From: Macrostomum lignano
Taxonomy: Eukaryota
NCBI GenBank assembly: GCA_002269645.1
Contig: NIVC01001776.1
Location: 388,809-452,808, forward strand
DNA length: 64,000 nt
Direction of reading: 5' to 3'
Part shown: positions 5,469-26,147 of the stretch, one piece after another
How positions within the stretch are numbered: position 1 is the first letter of the stretch
How the letters are laid out: each line of letters begins with the position of its first letter
The notes under the pieces: generated by a model
Told to the model about the DNA's origin: nothing
Seen by the model: the letters and a program-made list of their open reading frames with translations, nothing else
Databases searched by the model: none
Position numbers and translations under genes: made by a program

Positions 5469-5474
5469 GCCCGC
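5469..5474 (+). repeat. 6-bp target-site duplication GCCCGC (second copy 23224-23229)
   Basis: An identical hexamer directly flanks both termini. A 6-bp TSD is typical of Polinton integrases. Confidence 0.97.
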
Positions 5475-5838
5475 AGTAGTAGGTAAAAAGACGCCTACAG
5501 ACCCAGAGCACTTTTTAAATAGCAGTTTTAAGGGTCTAGAGGGGGGACACGGGGGGTAAATAAAAAAACACATCTAAACACCCTTAACACATCTAATCAC
5601 CCATAAACACATCTAATCACCCTTAATACCAAAAAGCAATATAACCCACCCCCAACACCCCCAACACTCCCCCTCGTGTCCCCCCTCTGGAACCTTATAA
5701 ACGGCCATTAAAAAAGGTCTGATCTGTAAGCGTCGTTTTACCTACTACTACACAACCCAACACTCCCCAACACTTCTAACACTTCCAAATCTCTATAACC
5801 CCTCGCACGCGCCGCAGGCGCGAAGGGTCTTTTTCTGT
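5475..5838 (+). repeat. Left terminal inverted repeat (364 bp)
   Basis: Reverse complement of 22858-23223. The only differences I found are two G/C homopolymer runs (6 vs 7 nt). Confidence 0.96.
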
Positions 5839-6024
5839 AGTATGAAACTTCATACTAGCCCATTCATGAAGAGGAGGCATAATACCATATATGGCAGCGA
5901 GAGTTTCATTCATAAGTTATAAATCGTCTCTTTTTCTTATACCACCCACTGTTCTATTATTCTACCCCAACCTATTGTGCTTCCACTTCGTCTCTTTTTT
6001 CTGTTACTAAAAATAGAACAAAAA

Positions 6025-6435
6025 ATGACACACGTTACACATATGCAAAATCTGAACGAATTGCAGGTAGGAGACCCAATTGAATACCGAGGTGAGGGGC
6101 TTTTTGATGTGGTTGGTACAGCAGCGAATTTCGTTAAAGACAATATGGGTCTTATAGGCCAAGCAGGCTCTGCAGCAGGTTCTATAACAAACGCTGTAAA
6201 GGGCGGAATCGAAGCAGCGAGGGCAGTAGAAGAACTAAAGAAATTGAGAGAATTTAACGACACCCTCTCACAAATAAAAGCAATAAAAGATTTGAAACTA
6301 GCGCAGGAAACAACTCAAGCCGCACAACCAACAGAAACCCCCACGAAAAGCGCGCCAATAAGTAATAAAGATATTCAGGATTTTAATAAAATGTTAACCA
6401 CAATTAAAGGCGGAAAAGGATTAAAGAAATTTTAA
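6025..6435 (+). CDS. Small probable virion core protein (136 aa) with GxG adenain-type sites
   Basis: ATG in AAAAAATG context at 6025 (the ORF track starts earlier at a non-ATG codon). Motifs YRGEG|LF and IKGGKG|L resemble maturation-protease sites, followed by an amphipathic Gly/Ala helix. Confidence 0.65.
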   Translation: MTHVTHMQNLNELQVGDPIEYRGEGLFDVVGTAANFVKDNMGLIGQAGSAAGSITNAVKGGIEAARAVEELKKLREFNDTLSQIKAIKDLKLAQETTQAAQPTETPTKSAPISNKDIQDFNKMLTTIKGGKGLKKF

Positions 6436-6445
6436 CAATATAAAA

Positions 6446-7432
6446 ATGGACACAGATAACGACCGCTTATATTTTATAGGAGAAATTGTAGATACTTTAG
6501 ATCTAGATGATAATAAAAATAGCCACACAATGTTAAAAAGATTGGATCGTTTAGGTAAAAAACTTGACTACGATATCGATACATTTAAACTTGCTGCAAA
6601 ATATGCACAAGAAGGAAGGCCAATATCCTTTAAGAATCATGGCAGAAATTATAGGCTGACAGACTCTGATGTAAAATTTTTATTGGAGACTCACACTAAA
6701 AAAGACGGTGGGTTGTTACCTATTTTACCAATTCTTTTAGGCCTCGGAGCAGCCGGAGCAGCCGGTTTAGCAGGCAAAAGAATTCATGATAACCGAAAAC
6801 AGTTAGCAGAATTAAAAGCAAAACAAGGGGGGATATTGCCACTAGCAACTTTATTACCAATAATTTTTGCAGGAATAGGAGCAGCTGGTGGAATAGCAGG
6901 TGGCGCAGCTGGAATCACAAAAGCAGTAAATGATAAAAAAGCTGCGGATGAAAAAGCTAAACGAGATGCAGAATTTCAAAGACAGCAAATAACACAGGAC
7001 GCACAATTCAAACAGAAACTTATTGATACCATTAATAGTAGTTCAGCAACAGCAGAGCAAAAAAGAAATGCAGAAGCTAGGTTAGCAGCCGGAAAAGGTT
7101 TACTCTTGCAAGGAACAAATCACGGGAATGGTTTGGTTTTAAAAGGAACAACCCAAGGAAGTGGAGTTGTAGCAGATAAACTACATGAATTTGGCCAAAC
7201 TTTAGAAAAAACGGGTGAGAAAGCTAAAGGATTTTTTGACAATATTGGAGCTAATTTTAGACCAGCTGTTCAGAAAATTTTTAATAAATTAGGAAAAGAT
7301 TTTAACATCATTGAAAAACACGACGGAAGCGGATTATATCTCGAAATGAGACCAAAAGCAGGATCAGGAATTTTCTTAAATTCAAACGTTATGGGCAATG
7401 GATTGCTATTACCAAAAGCAGATCTCGAATAG
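6446..7432 (+). CDS. Membrane-active/core precursor with two adenovirus protein X (mu precursor)-like hydrophobic motifs
   Basis: KDGG|LLPILPILLGLGAAGAAG and KQGG|ILPLATLLPIIFAGIGAAGG resemble the adenovirus pX GGILPLLIPLIAAAIGA motif. Six GxG-hydrophobic motifs follow in the C-terminal half. Confidence 0.75.
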   Translation: MDTDNDRLYFIGEIVDTLDLDDNKNSHTMLKRLDRLGKKLDYDIDTFKLAAKYAQEGRPISFKNHGRNYRLTDSDVKFLLETHTKKDGGLLPILPILLGLGAAGAAGLAGKRIHDNRKQLAELKAKQGGILPLATLLPIIFAGIGAAGGIAGGAAGITKAVNDKKAADEKAKRDAEFQRQQITQDAQFKQKLIDTINSSSATAEQKRNAEARLAAGKGLLLQGTNHGNGLVLKGTTQGSGVVADKLHEFGQTLEKTGEKAKGFFDNIGANFRPAVQKIFNKLGKDFNIIEKHDGSGLYLEMRPKAGSGIFLNSNVMGNGLLLPKADLE

Positions 7433-7515
7433 GCTCCTGGGGGGTGGGTCTGGACACCAAAAACGCAAATTAAAAAATCAATAATTCAAATACTATATAA
7501 ATTATATTCTATAAA

Positions 7516-9903
7516 ATGGAAGCAATTTTAGCTCAAATCGACAACCCCGAACTTAGAGCACAATTAATAGCTCAAATCGAAGCACAACGAATTGCCGATA
7601 GGGCTGAAATAGAAGCTAGAATTAGGGCAGAAAATGAGATACGTTTAGAAAGACAATTAAATGATATTGATAACCCCCAACCACAAGGACAAAATGGAGC
7701 TGAAGTAATATATATAGATATAGATATAAATACAAATTATAAAGAATATTTTAAACAAATGAAAGATAAAATAAAGACCATATTAGATAACTATACTATA
7801 AGACCAAATAACAAACGACAGCCAATTAAGTATAAAATAGAAGTTGAAACAGAATTTAAAAAACCAAATATACTTAATGCAAATTCAGAAATTGAAGTAA
7901 TAAATAACTTTTCACAAGAATCATATAAGACATTACTATCAATGGGGAATTACAACAATCAATTCGATCAAATAGAAGCTGAGTTTGATGAATGGATAGA
8001 TAAGATGACAGAAAACGGATCTGGGTTTATATTTGTTTCATGTAATTCAGCAACAGTAAAGATTGTTCCTATTGAAATTCTTAAAGGGCGATCACACATG
8101 ACACCATTATTTAAATCACATATGATTATAAATCCAGACAATAAAGATAATAAATGTTTATTATGGTGTTTATTAATTCATAAATATCACAAACAAGTAG
8201 AATCCCACACTAATAAAATATATAATTATAAACAATATGAGGATGAAATAATAATGAAAAACATCACATACCCAGTAGCAATAGATGATATATATAAGAT
8301 TGAAAAAATGAATGGTTTAAATATTAATGTGTTTACAATTGAAGAACCAGGAGATCTAGAAGTAATTCTAGCCGACCCAGAATGGTATAAGAAAAGGTGT
8401 TATCTTGTTAAGCCAGCAACTGATATAACAGCACCAGATCAAATCGACCTTTTGTACATACAGCGTGAAAATGAAACACATTATATATACATAAAGGACA
8501 TTAGTTCCTTTTTAAGAGAAAATAGAAATAGATATCCACTATGTAGAAATTGTTTCACATTTAAAAAGGATGAAAAAGCTCTTAAAAATCATCAACGATT
8601 TTGTTTAGATCATAAATTTACTAATGTTGTACTGCCAGCATCTGAAGATGCAACCCTAAAGTTCCAACAACATTATATGGCAATTAAAAAACCAATAGTA
8701 ATATATGCTGATTTTGAAGCAACAAATGTTCCCTTAAAAGAATCACAGACGGTATCTGATGATGGAGAATGCACAAAAAAATTAGCACAACAGTTTCCGA
8801 ATAGTTATTGTATATATGTACACTCCGTAGCTGATCATATATTTAAATCAAGGATGATTACTTACCACGGTAAGGATGCAGCAAAACACATGGCAGAATC
8901 ATTAGTAAATGCATTTGAATATATTCAAAATCAATATGATAAATTATCAAAAAATATTATTATGACAGATAAGGATAGAGACAATTATAAAAATGCAACA
9001 AATTGTTTTATGTGCAAAAGAGATTTAAGTGGGAAAAATAAGATACGAGAACATTGTCATCTAACGGGAATTTATCGAGGGGCAGCATGTAGATCATGTA
9101 ACGCAAAAGAAGGAAAAGGATGTAAGGAAATACCAGTATTTTTTCATAATGGTTCCGGATATGACTTTCATTTCCTAGTTCGAGAATTGCTTCATTTAGG
9201 TAGGGATGAATATGAATTAAATATATTACCTAAAACATCAGAAAATTACATATCAATAACATATGGTAAGAAATACTCCCATCTAGTTTTTCTAGATTCC
9301 TTGAGATTCTTATCAACATCTTTAGCAAATGTTGTTTCATCATTAGTTCCAAAACCATGGGATTTAGAAATAGTAAAGAAAAACTTTACAATACTATTGA
9401 ATCAATTCAAAAAAGAAAAACTATCCGAGGAAGAACTAATGCTATTAACTCGCAAGGGCATCTACCCATATGAATATGTAACATCTGAAGACGTATTTTT
9501 TCATACCGAATTACCCCCAATTGAAAAGTTTTATTCAACATTATCACAAACAAACATAAGTGAATCGGATTATGAACACGCTCAAAAAGTATGGAAATAT
9601 TTTAATTGTAAAACATTTAAAGATTATCATAATCTATATCTTAAAGCAGATGTTCTCCTTTTAGCTGATGCATTTGAAAACTTTAGGAATCATACATATG
9701 AGAACTTTAAAATTGATCCCGCTTATTGTTTCAGTGCACCCGGATTAACATGGGCATGTGGTTTGAAATACACAGATGTTGAGATTGATTTACTAACTGA
9801 TCATGATATGTTGTTAATGATTGAGAGAGGAATTCGCGGTGGGTTCTCGGGGGTACTAGGAGATAGATATACTAAAGTAAATAATAAATATCTACCAAAT
9901 TAA
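7516..9903 (+). CDS. polB: Protein-primed family B DNA polymerase, N-terminal part (terminal-protein region, OTU-like domain, Zn finger, exonuclease with endonuclease VII-like insert)
   Basis: DNKCLLWC...THYIYI (OTU-like Cys/His), CRNC...HQRFC, IYADFE (ExoI), CFMC...EHCHLTGIYRGAACRSCN, FFHNGSGYDFHF (ExoII), LDSLRFL, RKGIYPY, YLKADVLLLAD (ExoIII), RGIRGG. Confidence 0.96.
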   Translation: MEAILAQIDNPELRAQLIAQIEAQRIADRAEIEARIRAENEIRLERQLNDIDNPQPQGQNGAEVIYIDIDINTNYKEYFKQMKDKIKTILDNYTIRPNNKRQPIKYKIEVETEFKKPNILNANSEIEVINNFSQESYKTLLSMGNYNNQFDQIEAEFDEWIDKMTENGSGFIFVSCNSATVKIVPIEILKGRSHMTPLFKSHMIINPDNKDNKCLLWCLLIHKYHKQVESHTNKIYNYKQYEDEIIMKNITYPVAIDDIYKIEKMNGLNINVFTIEEPGDLEVILADPEWYKKRCYLVKPATDITAPDQIDLLYIQRENETHYIYIKDISSFLRENRNRYPLCRNCFTFKKDEKALKNHQRFCLDHKFTNVVLPASEDATLKFQQHYMAIKKPIVIYADFEATNVPLKESQTVSDDGECTKKLAQQFPNSYCIYVHSVADHIFKSRMITYHGKDAAKHMAESLVNAFEYIQNQYDKLSKNIIMTDKDRDNYKNATNCFMCKRDLSGKNKIREHCHLTGIYRGAACRSCNAKEGKGCKEIPVFFHNGSGYDFHFLVRELLHLGRDEYELNILPKTSENYISITYGKKYSHLVFLDSLRFLSTSLANVVSSLVPKPWDLEIVKKNFTILLNQFKKEKLSEEELMLLTRKGIYPYEYVTSEDVFFHTELPPIEKFYSTLSQTNISESDYEHAQKVWKYFNCKTFKDYHNLYLKADVLLLADAFENFRNHTYENFKIDPAYCFSAPGLTWACGLKYTDVEIDLLTDHDMLLMIERGIRGGFSGVLGDRYTKVNNKYLPN

Positions 9904-17904: not shown

Positions 17905-19377
17905 CTACAGCGGCGCGTCCCGAACAATCGTGTCATCAGCTTTAGCAATTGACATATATTCCTCTAGAAACAATACGTGTGCGTCTATTGCCTGATTACC
18001 GGTTTTATTAATCTCTAACATGTAATTAAGTCCAATATTGGCTACGTTTTCTTTCTGTGCAGTTAGATCATAAACAACCACTGGATGAATGTTTAGAAAC
18101 TCTGTGGGTGTGTACTGAGGGACGGCATACGCTTCATTTTTGGCATAATCTTGATAATATTTTATAAAATCATTAACATTATTATTTGCAATATTTAGAT
18201 TAAGAGGATCTTTAACCGGATAATATTGATCATCAACCTGCAGGCGGATATTCTGAACATTAAACTCGTTAATAGCTGCAGCCGCATTGTCTGTTGCGGT
18301 GGCTGCTTGTTCTGCTATGGCGTCCGATTGAATCCAATATAAATCCCCATTTGCTCTTTTACTCCTTCTGTTTGTTATTTTAAACCAAACAAAAATATAT
18401 CTCACCCGGCGTTTTGATGTAATTATCTGCCACTGGAATGAATCCTGATTATTATTAATGGTTCGCATAAAATGTCGACGATTCAAATAAAATATTTCCT
18501 GATCATGAGTTAACTGATTATCGATATGTTTTAAAAGTGGGGCTGTTACCTCAAGAGTTGGCACGACTAATTGTATTGAATCTATGCGAACTGCTATATC
18601 GGTTGAAACCGAATTTCCAAAAAGTATCCTAGGCTGATATCCACCAGATATTTGCAACTGTATCCCAAATTTTAATCCTTTCCATACCCGATTTGGTGAG
18701 AAGAACCCAAATAGCGGAAAGATTGAAAAGTCTTGCTCATATGCTGTTGCTGTGGTTAAAACCGCGACTGGGAATTTATTCTGACGATCTATAAAACCCG
18801 TATTAATCTCTTTTGTATTAGTCATAGTGGTTACAACTGGAACTATATTGGTATTAAGGTAATTAATAAGAGCTGCGGTATCTGCACCGGCTGCTGGTGC
18901 TACGTTAGGAAAATTTATTGCTCCACCATCACCCTTATCGGGCATCCATCCAACATTATCACCAACTTGTTTTGATAAATAAGTATAATTTAAATGTTTC
19001 AAAACTCCATTAATCTCTGCGGGGTTTGATGCTGTCTCAACCTCGGCTCCATTAACTGACAGTTGTGCTTGGGAAAAACATTTATAAAACCAATCATTTT
19101 CTATTATTATTCCAGATCGATCTGCGATATCGCCGGCTGCAAGAGCGGTTCCATCATTTCTAGTATACAACCATCTAACACGGAAAAATGCATTTTTCAT
19201 ATCCAATATAGTGTTGGTTGCGCCGATGTCAAAAGTTACCGTTCCGGTAGTAAAGTTATTTGAATTATCACTTGTTGGTAGGGTATAATTCAAATCTCTT
19301 GCCCTAACCTCATTAATATACTGGCGGTGCTTTTTGAAATGAAATTTATCACTCCACATAGTTTTTGTTTCAGCCAT
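17905..19377 (-). CDS. MCP: Major capsid protein (double jelly-roll)
   Basis: 490-aa beta-rich protein adjacent to the ATPase and penton. FSQAQLSVNGAEVE, RIDSIQLVVPTL, RVRYIFVWF, NIRLQVDDQYYP, HPVVVYDLT. Confidence 0.88.
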   Translation of the reverse strand: MAETKTMWSDKFHFKKHRQYINEVRARDLNYTLPTSDNSNNFTTGTVTFDIGATNTILDMKNAFFRVRWLYTRNDGTALAAGDIADRSGIIIENDWFYKCFSQAQLSVNGAEVETASNPAEINGVLKHLNYTYLSKQVGDNVGWMPDKGDGGAINFPNVAPAAGADTAALINYLNTNIVPVVTTMTNTKEINTGFIDRQNKFPVAVLTTATAYEQDFSIFPLFGFFSPNRVWKGLKFGIQLQISGGYQPRILFGNSVSTDIAVRIDSIQLVVPTLEVTAPLLKHIDNQLTHDQEIFYLNRRHFMRTINNNQDSFQWQIITSKRRVRYIFVWFKITNRRSKRANGDLYWIQSDAIAEQAATATDNAAAAINEFNVQNIRLQVDDQYYPVKDPLNLNIANNNVNDFIKYYQDYAKNEAYAVPQYTPTEFLNIHPVVVYDLTAQKENVANIGLNYMLEINKTGNQAIDAHVLFLEEYMSIAKADDTIVRDAPL

Positions 19378-19411
19378 TTTTTTAAGTTAAAAAAGTTTTT
19401 TATGTTAAAAA

Positions 19412-20080
19412 ATGAGTCAATTTATGGATGTTGATGGAGAGTTAGCGATTTATAAAGAGAAGCAAAGATATTCTGATTTTGTTAGAAATTTACAAAAAAG
19501 AAAGTTAGGAATACAATTAGCTGGCGAAAGATTTGCTGCTCCTTTTGTTAATCCTATTACGGGGAAAATTAGTGAACTAGAAAAAACAGATAAAGACCTT
19601 CTGGAAAAAATTGCTAAGAATACTGAGCCAAAAGAGGATGTAATTTTGGATGAGCCGCCTGCTTATGATGTTGATCAAACACTATTGAGAATTGCAGAGA
19701 TTAGACGTGCAGAAAGGAATGGAGTTGAACAATATCCAAGAGTACCAGCTAGTATTGCTGCGATAGATTTAGGTAATAATAATTATCGAATTGGTGGAGT
19801 TGATAAAAATCGAAATGAACTATATAGAGAATTGGGTGGGGCATTTAATATTATTATGAACCCTAGGGTAAAATTTAACCCCGATTTATATACTAGGGAT
19901 GAATTAGTAAGTGCTAAAATTTTTTACGATGAGTTAGGAGGTGGAGGTGTTAAAAATACCAGCTTGTATAAAAGGATTGTTAATTCTATAAATAACAAAC
20001 CGGCTGTTGGAGAAGGATTTAAAACTCCTAGAAAACTTGTTTTAGCTGCTGCGAAAGCTGCTGGACATACAGGTGTTTAA
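19412..20080 (+). CDS. Conserved Polinton core-type protein (uncharacterised PZ/PW class, assignment uncertain)
   Basis: F..PIT...., YTRDEL, a GEG site and a terminal LAAAKAAGHTG resembling the LLAS..AG(N/H)TG motif I recall from Polinton proteins. It may be C-terminally truncated. Confidence 0.6.
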   Translation: MSQFMDVDGELAIYKEKQRYSDFVRNLQKRKLGIQLAGERFAAPFVNPITGKISELEKTDKDLLEKIAKNTEPKEDVILDEPPAYDVDQTLLRIAEIRRAERNGVEQYPRVPASIAAIDLGNNNYRIGGVDKNRNELYRELGGAFNIIMNPRVKFNPDLYTRDELVSAKIFYDELGGGGVKNTSLYKRIVNSINNKPAVGEGFKTPRKLVLAAAKAAGHTGV

Positions 20081-20103
20081 TTGTTAAATTTATTTTTTAT
20101 AAA

Positions 20104-20685
20104 ATGGTTGAAACAAAGATTTGTACTAAGTGTAAACAAGAAAAACCGATGACAAAAGAGTTTTATTTTTGGAGAAATGATTCAAAAAAATTTAGAAATG
20201 ATTGCCGATCTTGTCATAATGCCTCATCTGCTATTTGGATAAAAAACAATAAAGATAAATGGAATGAATATAGAAAAAATAAGTATCACACTGATGATAA
20301 TTACAAACATATTGTTTTAATTAGAAATAGAATAAATTGGGCGTTGAAAAATTTTAATGACAAGGACTATATCTCATATCTTGGTTGCACAAAAGAATTC
20401 TTTTTTGATTGGTTAAATTTCACAAGAAATTATTATGTATCAAAAGATTATACTGGAAAGTTAGATATTGATCATTTCATCCCCGCTTCTTCATTTACTT
20501 ACAAAGATAATGACCAGATGAAAAAGTCTGAAAACTGGAGAAATAAAAGATACTTAACTAGCGTAGATAATCGCTATAAAAAAGTTCAACAACCAACCAT
20601 TGAAGAGTTTGCAAAACAATTAGTGCTATCATGTATTTTTAAGGCTATTAAAAATGAGCGACCGAACGAAGTTCGCGAACCGTAG
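20104..20685 (+). CDS. Free-standing HNH (His-Me finger) homing-type endonuclease with N-terminal Zn finger
   Basis: CTKC...CRSC, YLGC, DIDHFIP, NWRN and DNRYKK (H-N-N), similar to giant-virus HNH proteins. It has its own TATAAAATG start. Confidence 0.88.
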   Translation: MVETKICTKCKQEKPMTKEFYFWRNDSKKFRNDCRSCHNASSAIWIKNNKDKWNEYRKNKYHTDDNYKHIVLIRNRINWALKNFNDKDYISYLGCTKEFFFDWLNFTRNYYVSKDYTGKLDIDHFIPASSFTYKDNDQMKKSENWRNKRYLTSVDNRYKKVQQPTIEEFAKQLVLSCIFKAIKNERPNEVREP

Positions 20686-20740
20686 GTTCGATCGTGCGAT
20701 GCACGCGTTCCGAAGGAACGATCAATTAGTATTTGAATGA

Positions 20741-20842
20741 GGATTTTTAGATGTTCAAAAAGGATTAACAAGCTTACCGAGTATTTTTACTACTGGAAGG
20801 TATACAAATGAATTACACCTGCCGTCGTATAATTTCACAGGT
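20741..20842 (+). CDS. PLA2-integrase gene, 5' exon (no in-frame ATG after the TGA at 20738)
   Basis: Reads GFLDVQKGLTSLPSIFTTGRYTNELHLPSYNFTG, the N-terminal half of a parvovirus-type PLA2 Ca loop. Not in the ORF track. Confidence 0.85.
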
Positions 20843-21143
20843 TACCCCGTGGCCTGAGTGAGGAAGTCAATGTCCTTGCTAGTCACTATTTGTGGCGACA
20901 TCTTCAAATTGCGTGAAACCCGTCATACAGCTTCAAGTACCACTTCAATTGAGAAATCTTTTGAAGGAACAGAGGTAACTCCTCTTCCCAACGGTAACAA
21001 GCTTGAAGACACGGTGGCAATGCGCAGCCAAGCTCCTAAGTATTTAAATATAAGGAGAAGGTTCAGAGAGCAGACGGAGATGGGCGGTAATTTATCCGCT
21101 TAAGGTGTGCTCCAGCCTATTTCGAAAGATTTAGGGCAAACTA
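20843..21143 (+). ncRNA. Group I self-splicing intron, IC1-like, ORF-less, 301 nt
   Basis: P AAAUUGCGUGAAA, Q AAUGCGCAGC, R GUUCAGAGAGCA and S UAAGGUGUGCUCC elements are present in order. P1, P2.1, P3, P4, P5abc, P6, P7, P8, P9, P9.0 and P10 can all be paired. Removal restores FTG-PGT in frame. Confidence 0.93.
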
Positions 21144-22295
21144 CCCGGCACTCGCTTAGATTTGAGATTAAATCCTGATGATGACACTCCAAAAGCTGAT
21201 TCAATTCCCATTAACGGCATTGATTGGTTAGCATATTATCATGACTTAGCATACAGAGATGCTGATAAGAACACACCCGAAGAAGCATTAAGATTAAAAC
21301 ATGAAGCCGATAGAAAAATGATTCAAGGATTAGATAACTTACAAGGATTATCGGTAAGCCAAAGATTAACTCGGTGGATGGTTAAAAAAATCTTACAGTC
21401 TAAAGTTAAATTTGGTTTGGGAATTAATTACAACCAACATGGAAATAATTGTGTTGAGTGTTTATTATTAAGTGGTGGTGGGTTAAGTTTTGATGAGGCA
21501 AAGATTCTTCATAAAGAATATCGAAAACCTAAATTTTATAGAAAAATCATGAACTTCAAAAAGAACGAAATTTGGTATGCTGATTTAATGTCTATGCCGA
21601 TCGATAAAGGATATAAATATATTTTAACCATATTAGATGGTTTTACTCGATACGCGTGGGCAGTTCCTTTAAAATCCAAAAAAGGAGAGGAGGTTGCTGC
21701 TGCTTTTAGAAGCCTTGATGAAAAAAGCGAACGGTTGTGTGTTGATGAGGGAAAAGAATTTTACAATCCTCATATGTATAAATTATATCATTTTGAAAAT
21801 GGACAAGAAAGGAAAAAGGACGCGAATGGGGAGTATATTAATAAAATTTATTCTATTTATGGTGAAAGTAAAAATGCTTTAATAGAAAGATTTAATCGAA
21901 CTTTAGGTAAGAAATTGTGGTTTCAGTTTAGTCTTAATGGTAACCAAAAGTGGGTAAAAATATTACCAGATGTCGTGAAAGATTATAACAATTCATATCA
22001 TTCGGCAATAAAGATGACTCCTCAACAAGCTTATAACAATCCTGAAAACGTTAAAGTTACTTTTGGAAAATTTGAAAAAAATAAAAAGAAATCTTTTAAG
22101 GTTGGTGATTCTGTTTATATCTATAAATGGAAAAATAAGTTTGAAAAGGGAAGAAAAGGATATTGGAAAATAAGTGAGAAATTTACCATCAGTAAAGTTT
22201 TAAATACAAATCCTACAACCTATATAATTGCTGATAAGGATGGTGAAGAAATATTGGGTTCGTTTTATGAGAACCAACTAATATCAGCGAACTAA
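21144..22295 (+). CDS. INT: PLA2-integrase gene, 3' exon: parvovirus-type phospholipase A2 fused to a retroviral-type DDE integrase
   Basis: PGTRLDLRLNP...PINGID..AYYHDLAY...HEAD (PLA2 HD/D), KVKFGLG linker, then LHK..RK, WYADL (D), CVDEGKEF (D), LIERFNRTL (E) and a C-terminal FKVGD...GSFYENQL. Confidence 0.95.
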   Translation, partial: PGTRLDLRLNPDDDTPKADSIPINGIDWLAYYHDLAYRDADKNTPEEALRLKHEADRKMIQGLDNLQGLSVSQRLTRWMVKKILQSKVKFGLGINYNQHGNNCVECLLLSGGGLSFDEAKILHKEYRKPKFYRKIMNFKKNEIWYADLMSMPIDKGYKYILTILDGFTRYAWAVPLKSKKGEEVAAAFRSLDEKSERLCVDEGKEFYNPHMYKLYHFENGQERKKDANGEYINKIYSIYGESKNALIERFNRTLGKKLWFQFSLNGNQKWVKILPDVVKDYNNSYHSAIKMTPQQAYNNPENVKVTFGKFEKNKKKSFKVGDSVYIYKWKNKFEKGRKGYWKISEKFTISKVLNTNPTTYIIADKDGEEILGSFYENQLISAN

Positions 22296-22305
22296 GTTCG
22301 AACAA

Positions 22306-22530
22306 TTACTTGAGGCAGCATGGTAGTAAATTTTTTATAACAAACAAAAACAATATTATTACTATTATTGTTACTAATATAATTATTGACATTTGTTCAA
22401 CTGTTATCAAACTTAAATTTTCATTAAGTTCATTAATTGGAACATTTCCGATGTAGGAGTAATTTACCTTCATTTTTTTATATATATTTTTCATAATAAA
22501 TGTTGTTTCTGTTATAGAATAATAGTTCAT
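22306..22530 (-). CDS. Small single-pass membrane protein (74 aa) ending LLPCCLK
   Basis: AAAAAAATG at 22530, with hydrophobic run IIILVTIIVIILFLFVI. Confidence 0.6.
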   Translation of the reverse strand: MNYYSITETTFIMKNIYKKMKVNYSYIGNVPINELNENLSLITVEQMSIIILVTIIVIILFLFVIKNLLPCCLK

Positions 22531-22534
22531 TTTT

Positions 22535-22849
22535 TTACATAAAAATTTCAATTTCATTCTCAGAATCACTAGTTTCATATGAGCTATTTGTTGAGTTGGA
22601 ATCGTCTGAACGAACCTCCCAATCATCCGAATTTAAATAATTTCCAAGTTGAAATATTAACTCACCCTCTTGTTCTAAATCATACATCTCATCCAACTCT
22701 AATGGATAAAGTTTTAGGTCATGCTTGTCGTCATATTTTAAATAAACTTCATCAATTATTCCATTCAAAATATGTTGTTTTATTATCTCTGCATTTTTAG
22801 CAACAGTCTCAAAAGTATCACTAACAGAAAAGGTGTAAACTCGGGTCAT
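22535..22849 (-). CDS. Acidic hypothetical protein (104 aa)
   Basis: TAAAAATG start immediately inside the right TIR. D/E/S-rich C-terminus. Confidence 0.6.
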   Translation of the reverse strand: MTRVYTFSVSDTFETVAKNAEIIKQHILNGIIDEVYLKYDDKHDLKLYPLELDEMYDLEQEGELIFQLGNYLNSDDWEVRSDDSNSTNSSYETSDSENEIEIFM

Positions 22850-22857
22850 TTTTAGTA

Positions 22858-23223
22858 ACAGAAAAAGACCCTTCGCGCCTGCGGCGCGTGCGAGGGGTTA
22901 TAGAGATTTGGAAGTGTTAGAAGTGTTGGGGAGTGTTGGGTTGTGTAGTAGTAGGTAAAACGACGCTTACAGATCAGACCTTTTTTAATGGCCGTTTATA
23001 AGGTTCCAGAGGGGGGGACACGAGGGGGAGTGTTGGGGGTGTTGGGGGTGGGTTATATTGCTTTTTGGTATTAAGGGTGATTAGATGTGTTTATGGGTGA
23101 TTAGATGTGTTAAGGGTGTTTAGATGTGTTTTTTTATTTACCCCCCGTGTCCCCCCCTCTAGACCCTTAAAACTGCTATTTAAAAAGTGCTCTGGGTCTG
23201 TAGGCGTCTTTTTACCTACTACT
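22858..23223 (-). repeat. Right terminal inverted repeat (366 bp)
   Basis: Mirror of the left TIR, ending ...TTTTACCTACTACT. Confidence 0.96.
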
Positions 23224-26147
23224 GCCCGCATCCGGCTAAAAATGAGCAGCGCACAGGTAAGTTCAGAGGAATCGCAAAGCTTATTAGCAATTAATTGATA
23301 ATTATAGAAGCTCGCCAATTCAAACTGCAGCAGACCGGCTTCAGCAGCTCTCACTGGGCTCGGCTGCCCGGAGGTCAGGAAAGCCAGGACTGGCTGGTCA
23401 GGTGCAGCGTCAGTCAGTCAGGCCTGCTGTACCCGGATGTTGAAGCCAAGTTCTCAACTGGAAGTGAGTGCTGACCAAATAACTGCAGATCTGATTTTAC
23501 CTTAAAGATAGCACTAAAGCCAATGGCCTCATTTCAATCGCACAGGAAAAATCGTCCGCGAGCACCTCTGAGCATTTCAGTAATCAGTGGTGTGCTTATA
23601 TGAACTGTTTAGGGAAAAATGATAATGAAACAAAGAATAATAATAACTTTTAAGAGGATTTTTGTTTATTCGCTTACATCTTTGAGAAAATGACTCCTAA
23701 TTGGCCCTTAATAGCCAGCCGTCATACCGGTAGGATTTAAAAAACGGAAAAAACTTTGGAAACAGAAAACGATCAACTGGAAATAAGTGAAAGATGGGTA
23801 GACTGTAGCTGAGATATGTTTTATTAACATGGCCTAATTCATATGTTTCGTTTTAAAGTTGCAGCTCAGTGCGACGATCGCTCGGCAAGGTTTTTCTCGC
23901 TTCTATTGGCTTCTATACTGGCTTCACTAGTTGTGGGCTTCCTTCTGTCTACAATATACCACAAATCTGGTATGCTTTTTACCTGCGAGAGAAATCTGGT
24001 GAGTCATATTTAAAATATTTCAAAATTCAATTTCAAATCTGCCAGAAAGTGTTTCACGTCATTATTTCGTACCATTTATGGTGCTGTGTTCATGCATACT
24101 CCATAGATCAAAGTTCATCATGCATATTTCCTTAATGCTTCGACAATGAAATTGCGATTTTTAATTTATCCTTTATACATGGAATGAATCCTGTACGCTT
24201 GAAAAATTTTAGCCACAGAGAGGTCACACTGAACAGCGAAGTCAGCACAATGCAGGTCAGGCCGTCCCAATGCGAATACGGAACAACTTCGCAGTGCAAA
24301 ATGACTCACACGGCAGCAGTGAATACGACTATCCAACCACTGAGCAGCCAGGAAGCTGCCGAAATGAACAGTAGGGTCAAGGAGGTGCCTACACAGGTGC
24401 TGCTGGTTCCTTTACAACAGGGACCACTGAATGAAGGTCGGGTTTACGTCAACCGGACTGAAAATGCTACTTGAGTCAGTTGAGAATTCAAGTAAGAACT
24501 TGAGAGGCTGTGAGACAGATTTTGACATTGTTGCTTGCCAAGTGCACCAGTGTCCAATATTCAGTCATGTGACCCATAATGAAACACTTCAAACCGATTC
24601 TGACTTGGCAACAAGTCGGTACTGCTATGCTTAATGATGCGACAATACTGATCACTTTGTGCACTATTTACTAGCTCTGATTTGTAGCTCTCTTTTATGA
24701 CTTTCATGAAGTAGATGTTGAAAACCGGTTTTTCGAACGATAGAACGAGCAGTCGCTGTTTTCGTGATATTACTGGTATTACTAAAAATAGAATCTGACG
24801 CATGCTATTTTTAAATGTGTTCATATTTTTATCTGACTACTTCTAGTAGTCTACTGTGTTTCTTAGATCTCTACACTATTAGAAATTTGCTTTTTTAAGG
24901 CGACTTATGCTTTACTCCTGTAACAATAATTAAACTCGATTTCTTGGTCAAGAATCCAAATATATATTTTTCCGATTCAAAATTCAGTCAACATGTTTGT
25001 TTTCTGATGCAACTGGAAGTACTTGTAGGCCCTGTGTACCTCTGAGACGCTGAATTGATAGATGTGGTCTTTGGTTGCGGTCGGGTTCTTCTTGACGAGT
25101 AGTAGACTGTAGAGCCGGCTTATAGTATTTGTGCTTTCAATAGCAGAGGCCCAATGAGATTCTGGGAAATAGCTATGTGCTCCAAGGAAAAATGAGAGGA
25201 CTGCATCAAAACTCAACAATGGGCTGAATAGCCAAGTAGTATAGGCCATTGGTTGCGTAGCTCGTATACGAATGGAGCAGATTCTTAATGTTACAGGCGG
25301 ACTTATTTTTCGACGCAGGAGGGATTAGAAAAAGGATTAGAAAGTCCTGAAGGACTTATCACAGGCTTAAACGTCCTTGGAAGCACTGGGCACGCTATAG
25401 TGCTCTCCGTAAGTTTCTGTTACTCATTAAGACTGCTTGTTTACAGATGTGATAGGGAAAGCGCTTTCGGCAACCTAGTTTACTGTAAGCGTACATGATT
25501 GATGCATTTGATTGATTTCAGTTTAGGGGTTCTCTGGGTGCGCACATTATGGTAGAATAAAATTCATGCAACGATTGTTCATGTCGGTGTCTAAAGGTCA
25601 ACTGAATGTTTTATTGCTTATGTAGAGCTAACATTAGTCACATTCTATTTTCAGCATTTTTAGATTTACAAACGCATTTTCTTACCATACTACTAGCCAT
25701 ACAAAAACAAATTGAATACCTGTACATTATTAAGTCGGTTTTTCTGCTGTTACTGCACTTTACATGGGTTTTTCTTGTGCTTTGGCTCGACTCTTATCTT
25801 TTGCTTAAAAATGTGCAGTATATGCTGAAGCTAAGATTGCAAGGTAGAATTTTTGTATAAATTACAGAAAAGCCAGACACTGATACTTGATTTATAAAAA
25901 AGTAAATTGGTAAAAGCTAATACTAACTAAAATAAAGTACGGCTTTTGAATTCAAGTACGTCTTTAGTTCTTTGCGGCTCGAATCGTTTTGCAATGTCTG
26001 ATAAGCTAAACAGCGGAAATTTCAAACTAACATTTGCACTTTTGAATCTGCAAGTCTTCATCTTGTTGTCATTGGTTTCAGAGTAAGAAACGAATAGAAT
26101 GCTTTTTAATATCGCATCCAATTGTACTAAAGAATTTTTTGTTCCGC

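Follow-up and report, generated by a model that had tools for sequence, protein, structure and literature searches.

A group I intron that ends in adenosine in the PLA2-integrase gene of a polinton-like element

Introduction

The last base of group I introns is near-universally a guanosine. Group I ribozymes have a single guanosine-binding site (PMC2588497), and the G-C pair of P7 at this site recognizes the terminal G of the intron as well as the exogenous G (PMC5192423, citing Michel 1989 and Been & Perrotta 1991). In polinton-like viruses, group I introns have been found by Rfam scan in Paulinella micropora, Desmodesmus armatus, and Rhodomonas lacustris (PMC12220804). As at the locus studied here, those introns are of the self-splicing type and lie in genes of integrated polinton-like elements, there of protists; the R. 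lacustris introns occupy a short gene that precedes the capsid gene, and the report makes no mention of a PLA2-integrase site or of the terminal base. No usable report of a natural intron with a terminal A (omega-A) was found in the literature searched.

Here, we analyze a group I intron in a 64,000-nt stretch of a Macrostomum lignano contig, hereafter the window. An initial annotation, made from the letters of the DNA, had placed its 3' splice site after A21143 on the combined grounds of reading frame, P9.0, and P10, had described the P7/J8-7 region as remodelled, and had proposed a variant ribozyme class, slow and regulated splicing, or a point mutation silencing this copy. Our comparison with intron-less homologues and with related introns in other viruses confirms the placement of the splice site and favors a defect, over a new mechanism, as the most likely explanation of the terminal A.

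Results

The intron lies in an AT-rich element that spans 5473-23225 of the window (29-35% G+C versus 42-50% in the surrounding DNA) and is bounded by terminal inverted repeats (TIRs) of sequence AGTAGTAGGTAAAAAGACGCC... and a target-site duplication (TSD). Outside the element, neither Pfam on the larger flanking ORFs nor a tRNA scan gave a match.

Left TIR, 5473..5838, no strand assigned: about 366 nt, with the TSD GCCCGC ahead of it if the element proper begins AGTAG (5475).
Right TIR, 22858..23225, no strand assigned: GCCCGC directly after it.

The two arms show 0 substitutions over 366 nt and differ only by two 1-nt homopolymer lengths, and the 6-bp TSD is perfect on both sides of AGTAG...CTACT; these near-perfect TIRs together with the perfect TSD suggest that the element was inserted very recently. 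Inside each TIR lies an internal inverted repeat with runs of G and C of equal length (6/6 for the left TIR, 7/7 for the right), so that the two inter-arm differences are matched within each arm.

The element encodes an A32-type packaging ATPase (Pox_A32, 27.6 bits versus a Pfam cut-off of 22.8) and a 490-aa ORF whose end-to-end alignment to the DJR-like ORF of L276 (E = 7e-6, in a single comparison) makes it a weak candidate for the double jelly-roll capsid protein. Polintons proper are defined by a protein-primed family B DNA polymerase. Because no Pfam, PDB, or PHROG match to a family B polymerase was recognized in the large ORFs at 7516-9903 and 9968-11476, we name the element polinton-like rather than Polinton. 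The first of these ORFs (795 aa, with no recognizable replicase domain) contains an internal endonuclease VII/HNH-like segment at about residues 408-543 (Pfam PF02945, E = 4e-7), perhaps the element's second endonuclease insertion. On the minus strand, a 661-aa ORF (13701-15686) carries an F5/8 type C (discoidin) domain and, near 15200-15462, tandem repeats with a unit of about 57 nt, GAATTATCAACTTC-(A or G)-GTTTTGGTATAAGAA; its product may serve as a fibre or in attachment.

Within this element, the intron interrupts a gene in which a phospholipase A2 (PLA2) motif is fused to an integrase; the exons and the ORF that precedes them are as follows.

HNH/endonuclease VII-like ORF, 20104..20685, plus strand: 193 aa; PHROG families, E = 1.5e-8.
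Exon 1 of the PLA2-integrase gene, 20737..20842, plus strand: ATG at 20737-20739; homologues P0001, P0021, and L001.
Exon 2, 21144..22295, plus strand: rest of the parvovirus-type PLA2 motif (PGT...HDLAY) fused to an rve integrase.

The rve integrase scores E = 4.5e-7 in the window, just under the Pfam cut-off, and its homologues carry PF00665. The window protein keeps all 36 of the 36 invariant columns of the PLA2-integrase family alignment and is 67% identical to its best homologue, P0001. The reading frame of exon 2 is intact. Exon 1 as assembled has no in-frame ATG: after the ATG at 20737 the sequence runs AGG ATTTTT A GAT, in which the T5 run at 20744-20748 puts this ATG out of frame by a +1 shift. 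With T4 in place of T5, exon 1 reads MRILDVQKGLTSLPSIFTTGRYTNELHLPSYNFTG (MRILDVQKGL...), a start that agrees with the short N-termini of P0001 (MDIQKGLSNLP) and P0021 (MPLDIQSKLSNLP). A frameshift mutation or a homopolymer error in the assembly could each explain the T5 run; programmed frameshifting is a less likely alternative. A spliceosomal GT...AG intron at 20073-20750, fusing the upstream ORF in frame to exon 1, was considered and dropped, the ATG at 20737 being in frame once one T is taken from the T5 run.

The upstream ORF (19412-20080) and the PLA2-integrase gene are separated by a spacer with an insert of about 650 nt that holds the HNH-like ORF, which is free-standing and not part of the group I intron. 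Only 4 nt separate the stop of the upstream gene from the PLA2-integrase ATG in L002, a relative without the intron, and the insert has the look of a free-standing homing-endonuclease cassette. Three hairpins rich in G+C (cgaac-gaa-gttcg, cgaacc-gta-ggttcg, and cgttcc-gaa-ggaacg) are found at 20655-20725, in the 3' end of the HNH-like ORF and the spacer.

The intron itself was recognized by Rfam RF00028, with a match at 20833-21134 of 65.3 bits (gathering threshold 50; E = 2e-16 for the 521-nt slice searched). Default filters missed this match both on the 64-kb window and on a 2.5-kb slice, and filter settings can hide group I introns of this kind in routine scans. Helices P3, P4, P5, P5a-c, P6, P6a, P7, P8, P9, and P9.0 were assigned by hand, and the parts of the intron on which the following argument depends are listed here.

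Group I intron, 20843..21143, plus strand: 301 nt, with no ORF; Rfam RF00028; junction set by intron-less homologues.
P1 hairpin, 20838..20856, plus strand: exon CAGGU (20838-20842) plus intron UAC, paired with the guide GUGGCCUG (20849-20856).
P7 5' strand, 21066..21072, plus strand: G-A(bulge)-GAGCA; G21068 is one partner in the guanosine-binding pair.
J8/7, 21102..21107, plus strand: AAGGUG, after U21101.
P7 3' strand, 21108..21113, plus strand: UGCUCC; C21112 pairs with G21068.
J7/9 AG, the 5' half of P9.0, 21114..21115, plus strand: pairs with C21141 and U21142.
P9 hairpin, 21116..21135, plus strand: CCUAUUUC-GAAA-GAUUUAGG.
Omega, the last base of the intron, 21143..21143, plus strand: A; G in two other introns at the same insertion site.

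P1 extends from C20838-G20856 through U20842.G20852, the wobble pair at the splice site, and the same U.G logic is seen in L001. In P10, the exon 2 bases C21144-G21148 pair with the 5' part of the guide (20847-20851). P7 comprises G21066-C21113, the bulged A21067, G21068-C21112, A21069-U21111, G21070-C21110, C21071-G21109, and A21072-U21108, so that the sequence of P7 (GAGCA/UGCUC), that of J8/7 (UAAGGUG with its preceding U), and the retention of the guanosine-binding G-C pair are all as first described. P9.0 consists of A21114-U21142 and G21115-C21141, with the same CAG...ACU arrangement in L001.

This fold was evaluated in a covariation alignment of the window intron with L001, L006, and L040, using a P3-P9 model of 59 pairs. 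Overall, 93% of the cells were paired and 22 of the 59 pairs were changed on both sides, a result reached by none of 500 shuffles, whereas controls in which the partners were slid by 1-3 columns gave 36-49% pairing and 2-6 double changes. Compensatory changes support the P3/P7 pseudoknot and the core helices P3-P8, and the P9 pair A21119-U21132 is replaced by C-G in L001, a compensated change. The 5' strand of P7 is invariant in the four aligned introns, as is the guanosine-binding pair G21068-C21112 next to the bulged A21067. That the fold is intact and covarying indicates an intron lineage under selection to splice.

The splice junction can be read from the protein. Twenty-three intron-less homologues run uninterrupted, with no length change, through ...H-L-P-G-(H or Y)-N-(F or Y)-T-G-P-G-T-R-L-D..., which in P0001 reads ELHIPGYNFTGPGTRLELRLNP; the window peptide reads ELHLPSYNFTG up to T20842 and PGTRLDLRLNP from C21144. 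The argument from the G-P-G-T frame is borne out by these homologues, which read NFTG/PGTRL. The 5' splice site after T20842 adjoins the local P1 hairpin. For the 3' splice site, every candidate from 21128 to 21155 was scored for frame, for P10 with the guide at 20846-20851, and for P9.0. Only position 21143 combines the correct frame, both P9.0 pairs, the best P10 (4/6), and the homologue peptide NFTG/PGTRL. The P10 pairs at this position are C21144-G20851, C21146-G20849, G21147-C20848, and G21148-C20847, with a C x U mismatch after the first of them. Exon 2 then begins CCC GGC ACT (P-G-T), and A21143 itself lies in no homopolymer (ACUA/CCC). G21135, G21136, G21147, and G21148 each shift the frame. 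The intron thus ends in A21143, and terminal guanosine (omega-G) is absent.

A second ACAGGT occurs at 20069-20074, identical to the true exon end, complementary to the guide, and placed in the frame of ORF 19412-20080, one codon short of its stop. A 5' splice site at 20074, which would make the HNH-like ORF intronic, was rejected: homologues continue the exon to 20842, and the alternative forms 5 pairs against 8 in the local P1 hairpin. Hypothetical splicing from 20074 would fuse ORF 19412-20080 to exon 2 (...AAGHTG/PGT...), and L002 has AATAAT there. Because the element contains 3 copies of ACAGGT against 3.2 expected, its placement, striking as it is, is probably a coincidence.

Two other introns were found at the Thr-Gly/Pro junction, both with a terminal G. 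The first is in L001, an ENA metagenome scaffold whose PLA2-integrase is 59% identical to that of the window; exon 1 ends ...YSFTG (acaggt/taacc) and the 3' end reads ...gattgagggagaactG/ccaggtaca (in RNA, ...GAGAACUG/CCAGGUACA and ...AACUG/CCAGG). L001 shares P2, P7, P9, and the tail GNNAACU with the window intron; its P7 is identical, and its J8/7 (AAAGUG) is one base off AAGGUG. Its P10 has 5 pairs against 4 in the window. Position +3 of P10 is A-U in L001 and C-G in the window, and this compensatory change fixes the register of the 3' splice site in both introns. Whereas the window intron has no ORF, L001 carries a 233-aa ORF (776-1477) in the P2 region that runs into the ribozyme core and shows a weak Eco47II (PD-(D/E)XK) match, under the Pfam cut-off (E = 6e-4); Eco47II-like ORFs also adjoin the PLA2-integrase genes of L276 and L277.

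The second is in L127 (IMGVR_UViG_3300027939_000003; protein 35% identical), with the junctions ...HNYTG acaggt/cgaatggcc and gtgtgaaaaG/cctttcact (RNA 3' end GAAAAG/CCUUUC). Its P7 is GACUG/CAGUC, unlike the GAGCA/UGCUC of the window intron. All three introns have in common the insertion site ACAGGU/.../CC., the guide logic, and a conserved C x U mismatch at P10 +2. No further introns were found at the P0012 and P0019 loci. The initial annotation had asked for the terminal base in sister copies: the sister introns in other viruses do have G, while an exact-protein look-up of the HNH ORF and the upstream ORF 19412-20080 returned no second copy of the element itself.

The P7 and J8/7 of the window intron also recur beyond this insertion site. 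In IMG/VR, roughly 200 related introns were recovered. Among about 86 viral-contig introns with a GCAGCCAAG.....AAG core, 76 have AGACUA and 3 have AGAGCA. A wider pattern search found GAGCA...(A)AGGUGUGCUC also in L003, L004, L006, L015, and L040, in all of which J8/7 is the identical AAGGUG; a metagenome scan with the 16-mer TTCAGAGAGCAGACGG gave matches mostly by chance, of which only L015 and L040 were useful. L040 lies in a giant-virus RPB1 gene and has P7 and J8/7 identical to those of the window intron. Its exon 1 ends ...NADFDGD (gat/aaatttt), with a good P1 against GUCGUC; its 3' end is ...tttcatG/gagatgaat, with a terminal G, and exon 2 begins EMNLHAPQ. In L006, a giant-virus metagenome-assembled genome from IMG/VR whose exon 1 is off the contig, the same argument gives ...ttcgtG/gagatgaat.

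Wherever the junction can be fixed, introns with the GAGCA/UGCUC P7 (L001 and L040) end in G, and not one base of the guanosine pocket differs between the A-ending window intron and its G-ending relatives. The supposed link between the remodelled P7/J8-7 and the terminal A does not hold, therefore, and we regard the combination of a GAGCA/UGCUC P7 with a J8/7 of AAGGUG as a subfamily trait unlinked to the last base.

The RPB1 introns (L006, 700-990; L040, 25-340 on the minus strand; and L004) are situated at or near the DFDGD/EMN metal-binding motif. They share with the window intron the P7 variant, J8/7 AAGGUG, and a very similar P4-P6, and they differ from it in gene and insertion site (DFDGD/EMN), in a GIY-YIG-like ORF, and in an extra hairpin after P9. 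Their nhmmer scores of 275-277 bits were obtained against a profile built from these same introns. Because the catalytic cores are nearly the same, an exchange of introns between giant viruses and the polinton-like viruses sharing their hosts is suggested.

Discussion

On balance, we favor a real, single G-to-A change that disables this copy of the intron. The intron would belong to an ordinary lineage with a terminal G, fixed at the Thr-Gly/Pro junction of the polinton-like-virus PLA2-integrase gene, and one transition would have given the integrated copy its A, the pocket G21068-C21112 remaining unchanged and presumably still specific for G. Because this G-C pair is unchanged, step 1 (attack of GTP after U20842) would be expected to proceed; step 2 (docking of the last base and ligation 21143/21144), judged from the biochemistry of the Tetrahymena ribozyme, would fail or run orders of magnitude more slowly. 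In the 1991 study of Been and Perrotta, exon ligation with A at the 3' splice site reportedly occurs only when the pocket pair is changed to A-U, and this adenosine-specific variant is not present in the window intron, where the pair is G21068-C21112. If the exons are not ligated, translation from exon 1 would enter the intron and stop after four codons, and no PLA2-integrase would be made; the frameshift after the ATG would have the same effect, so that this gene copy would be silenced either way.

The proposal of a silencing point mutation is thus in keeping with a second lesion in the same gene (the frameshift at 20744-20748), while a sequencing error would account for the A as well: either the PLA2-integrase gene has been hit twice, by the frameshift and by the terminal A, or the assembly is wrong twice. 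We presume that the A is real DNA. Against a disabling mutation stand the very young age of the element, with TIRs free of substitutions and a perfect TSD, and the retention of 36 of 36 invariant residues. An element so little diverged should carry few random mutations, and one falling exactly on the last base of the intron is therefore unlikely a priori. For one base in a very young insertion, the prior is low for each account, whether a private mutation from G to A, a mistake in the assembly, or an uncommon omega-A that still functions, and the three priors are roughly comparable.

An assembly or sequencing error, in which the DNA truly has G at 21143 and the intron is normal, is possible although unlikely. 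It would be in agreement with the G of the sister introns, with the otherwise intact intron and coding sequence, and with the 1-nt homopolymer differences that are the sole discrepancy between the TIR arms and the extra T of the T5 run, both typical of long-read assemblies. However, these visible discrepancies are homopolymer indels, whereas position 21143 would be a substitution outside any run (ACUA/CCC), and the agreement of G-run and C-run lengths within each TIR arm is more like real variation.

Less probable still is a terminal A that is tolerated or regulated, either through slow splicing at 21143/21144 with P9.0 and P10 positioning the site and the output of integrase being throttled, or through an unknown factor or a base modification (e.g. 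A-to-I editing) that restores recognition, the two forms taken together. P9.0 and P10 are indeed both in place at 21143, and in a young insertion with intact coding sequence and ribozyme helices the A may predate integration and have been present in the infecting virus. Yet no compensating change accompanies the A: all of P7, including the G-C pair and the bulged A, is as in the G-ending relatives, J8/7 is identical to that of the G-ending L040, and P10 is no stronger than in L001. Both other introns at the site have G, the frameshift in the gene argues against selection for its expression, and, in Tetrahymena biochemistry, a G-C pocket does not accept A. The fuller version, in which a real A was already carried by the infecting virus, the exons are ligated with the help of P9.0/P10, a host factor, or a modification, and the virion phospholipase-integrase is made at low or conditional levels, we consider improbable. 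Nor do the relatives point toward a variant ribozyme class with altered 3'-site recognition, as had been suggested, since L001, L040, and L127 end in G and the pocket contains no change favoring A.

Finally, a cryptic 3' splice site at a nearby G is very improbable: G21134 is the only neighboring G that keeps the frame (adding Gly-Lys-Leu, NFTG-GKL-PGT) and is where the Rfam alignment stops, but it is paired within P9 (C21117-G21134, a pairing conserved and covarying in L001), gives 2/6 in P10 and 1/2 in P9.0, and would place in the Y-x-G-x-G loop extra residues that 0 of the 23 aligned homologues have.

Should the A be a lesion or an error, as the preferred reading and the assembly account respectively would have it, the locus would hold an ordinary canonical intron in one damaged or mis-assembled copy. 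A functional A would give a rare exception, in nature, to the rule of the single guanosine site and a ready-made system for studying 3' splice-site choice without omega-G. Of more lasting value are the link to the RPB1 introns and the recurrence of the GAGCA/UGCUC core. The PLA2-integrase gene of polinton-like viruses harbors a site-specific group I intron family with a core nearly that of giant-virus RNA polymerase introns, and the GAGCA/UGCUC and AAGGUG core would seem to be a naturally recurring variant that functions with an intron-final G.

Among known systems, the window intron resembles the Tetrahymena type (IC1-like, RF00028), and we class it provisionally, by resemblance of sequence, as IC1. 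It shares with this type the P1 U.G at the 5' splice site and a guide that also forms P10, the P3-P8 core with its P3/P7 pseudoknot, a P5abc-type extension, the bulged A and G-C pair in P7, and P9.0, along with the strings AAAUUGCG.GAAA, GCAGCCAAG.UCCUAAG, and GUUCA.AGA. It differs in its last base, A rather than G; in P7, which is GAGCA/UGCUC rather than GACUA/UAGUC, with the outer pair flipped to G-C; in J8/7, AAGGUG rather than AAGAUA; and in its location in a protein-coding gene of a virus-like element rather than in rDNA. The engineered Tetrahymena mutant in which the G264-C311 pocket was changed to A-U and combined with a 3' A (Been & Perrotta 1991, cited in PMC5192423 and PMC2588497) offers a further likeness, the last intron base being A in both, but the window pocket is still G-C (G21068-C21112) and not A-U. 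In relation to the introns already described in polinton-like viruses (PMC12220804), the window intron is a new member, at an insertion site absent from that report.
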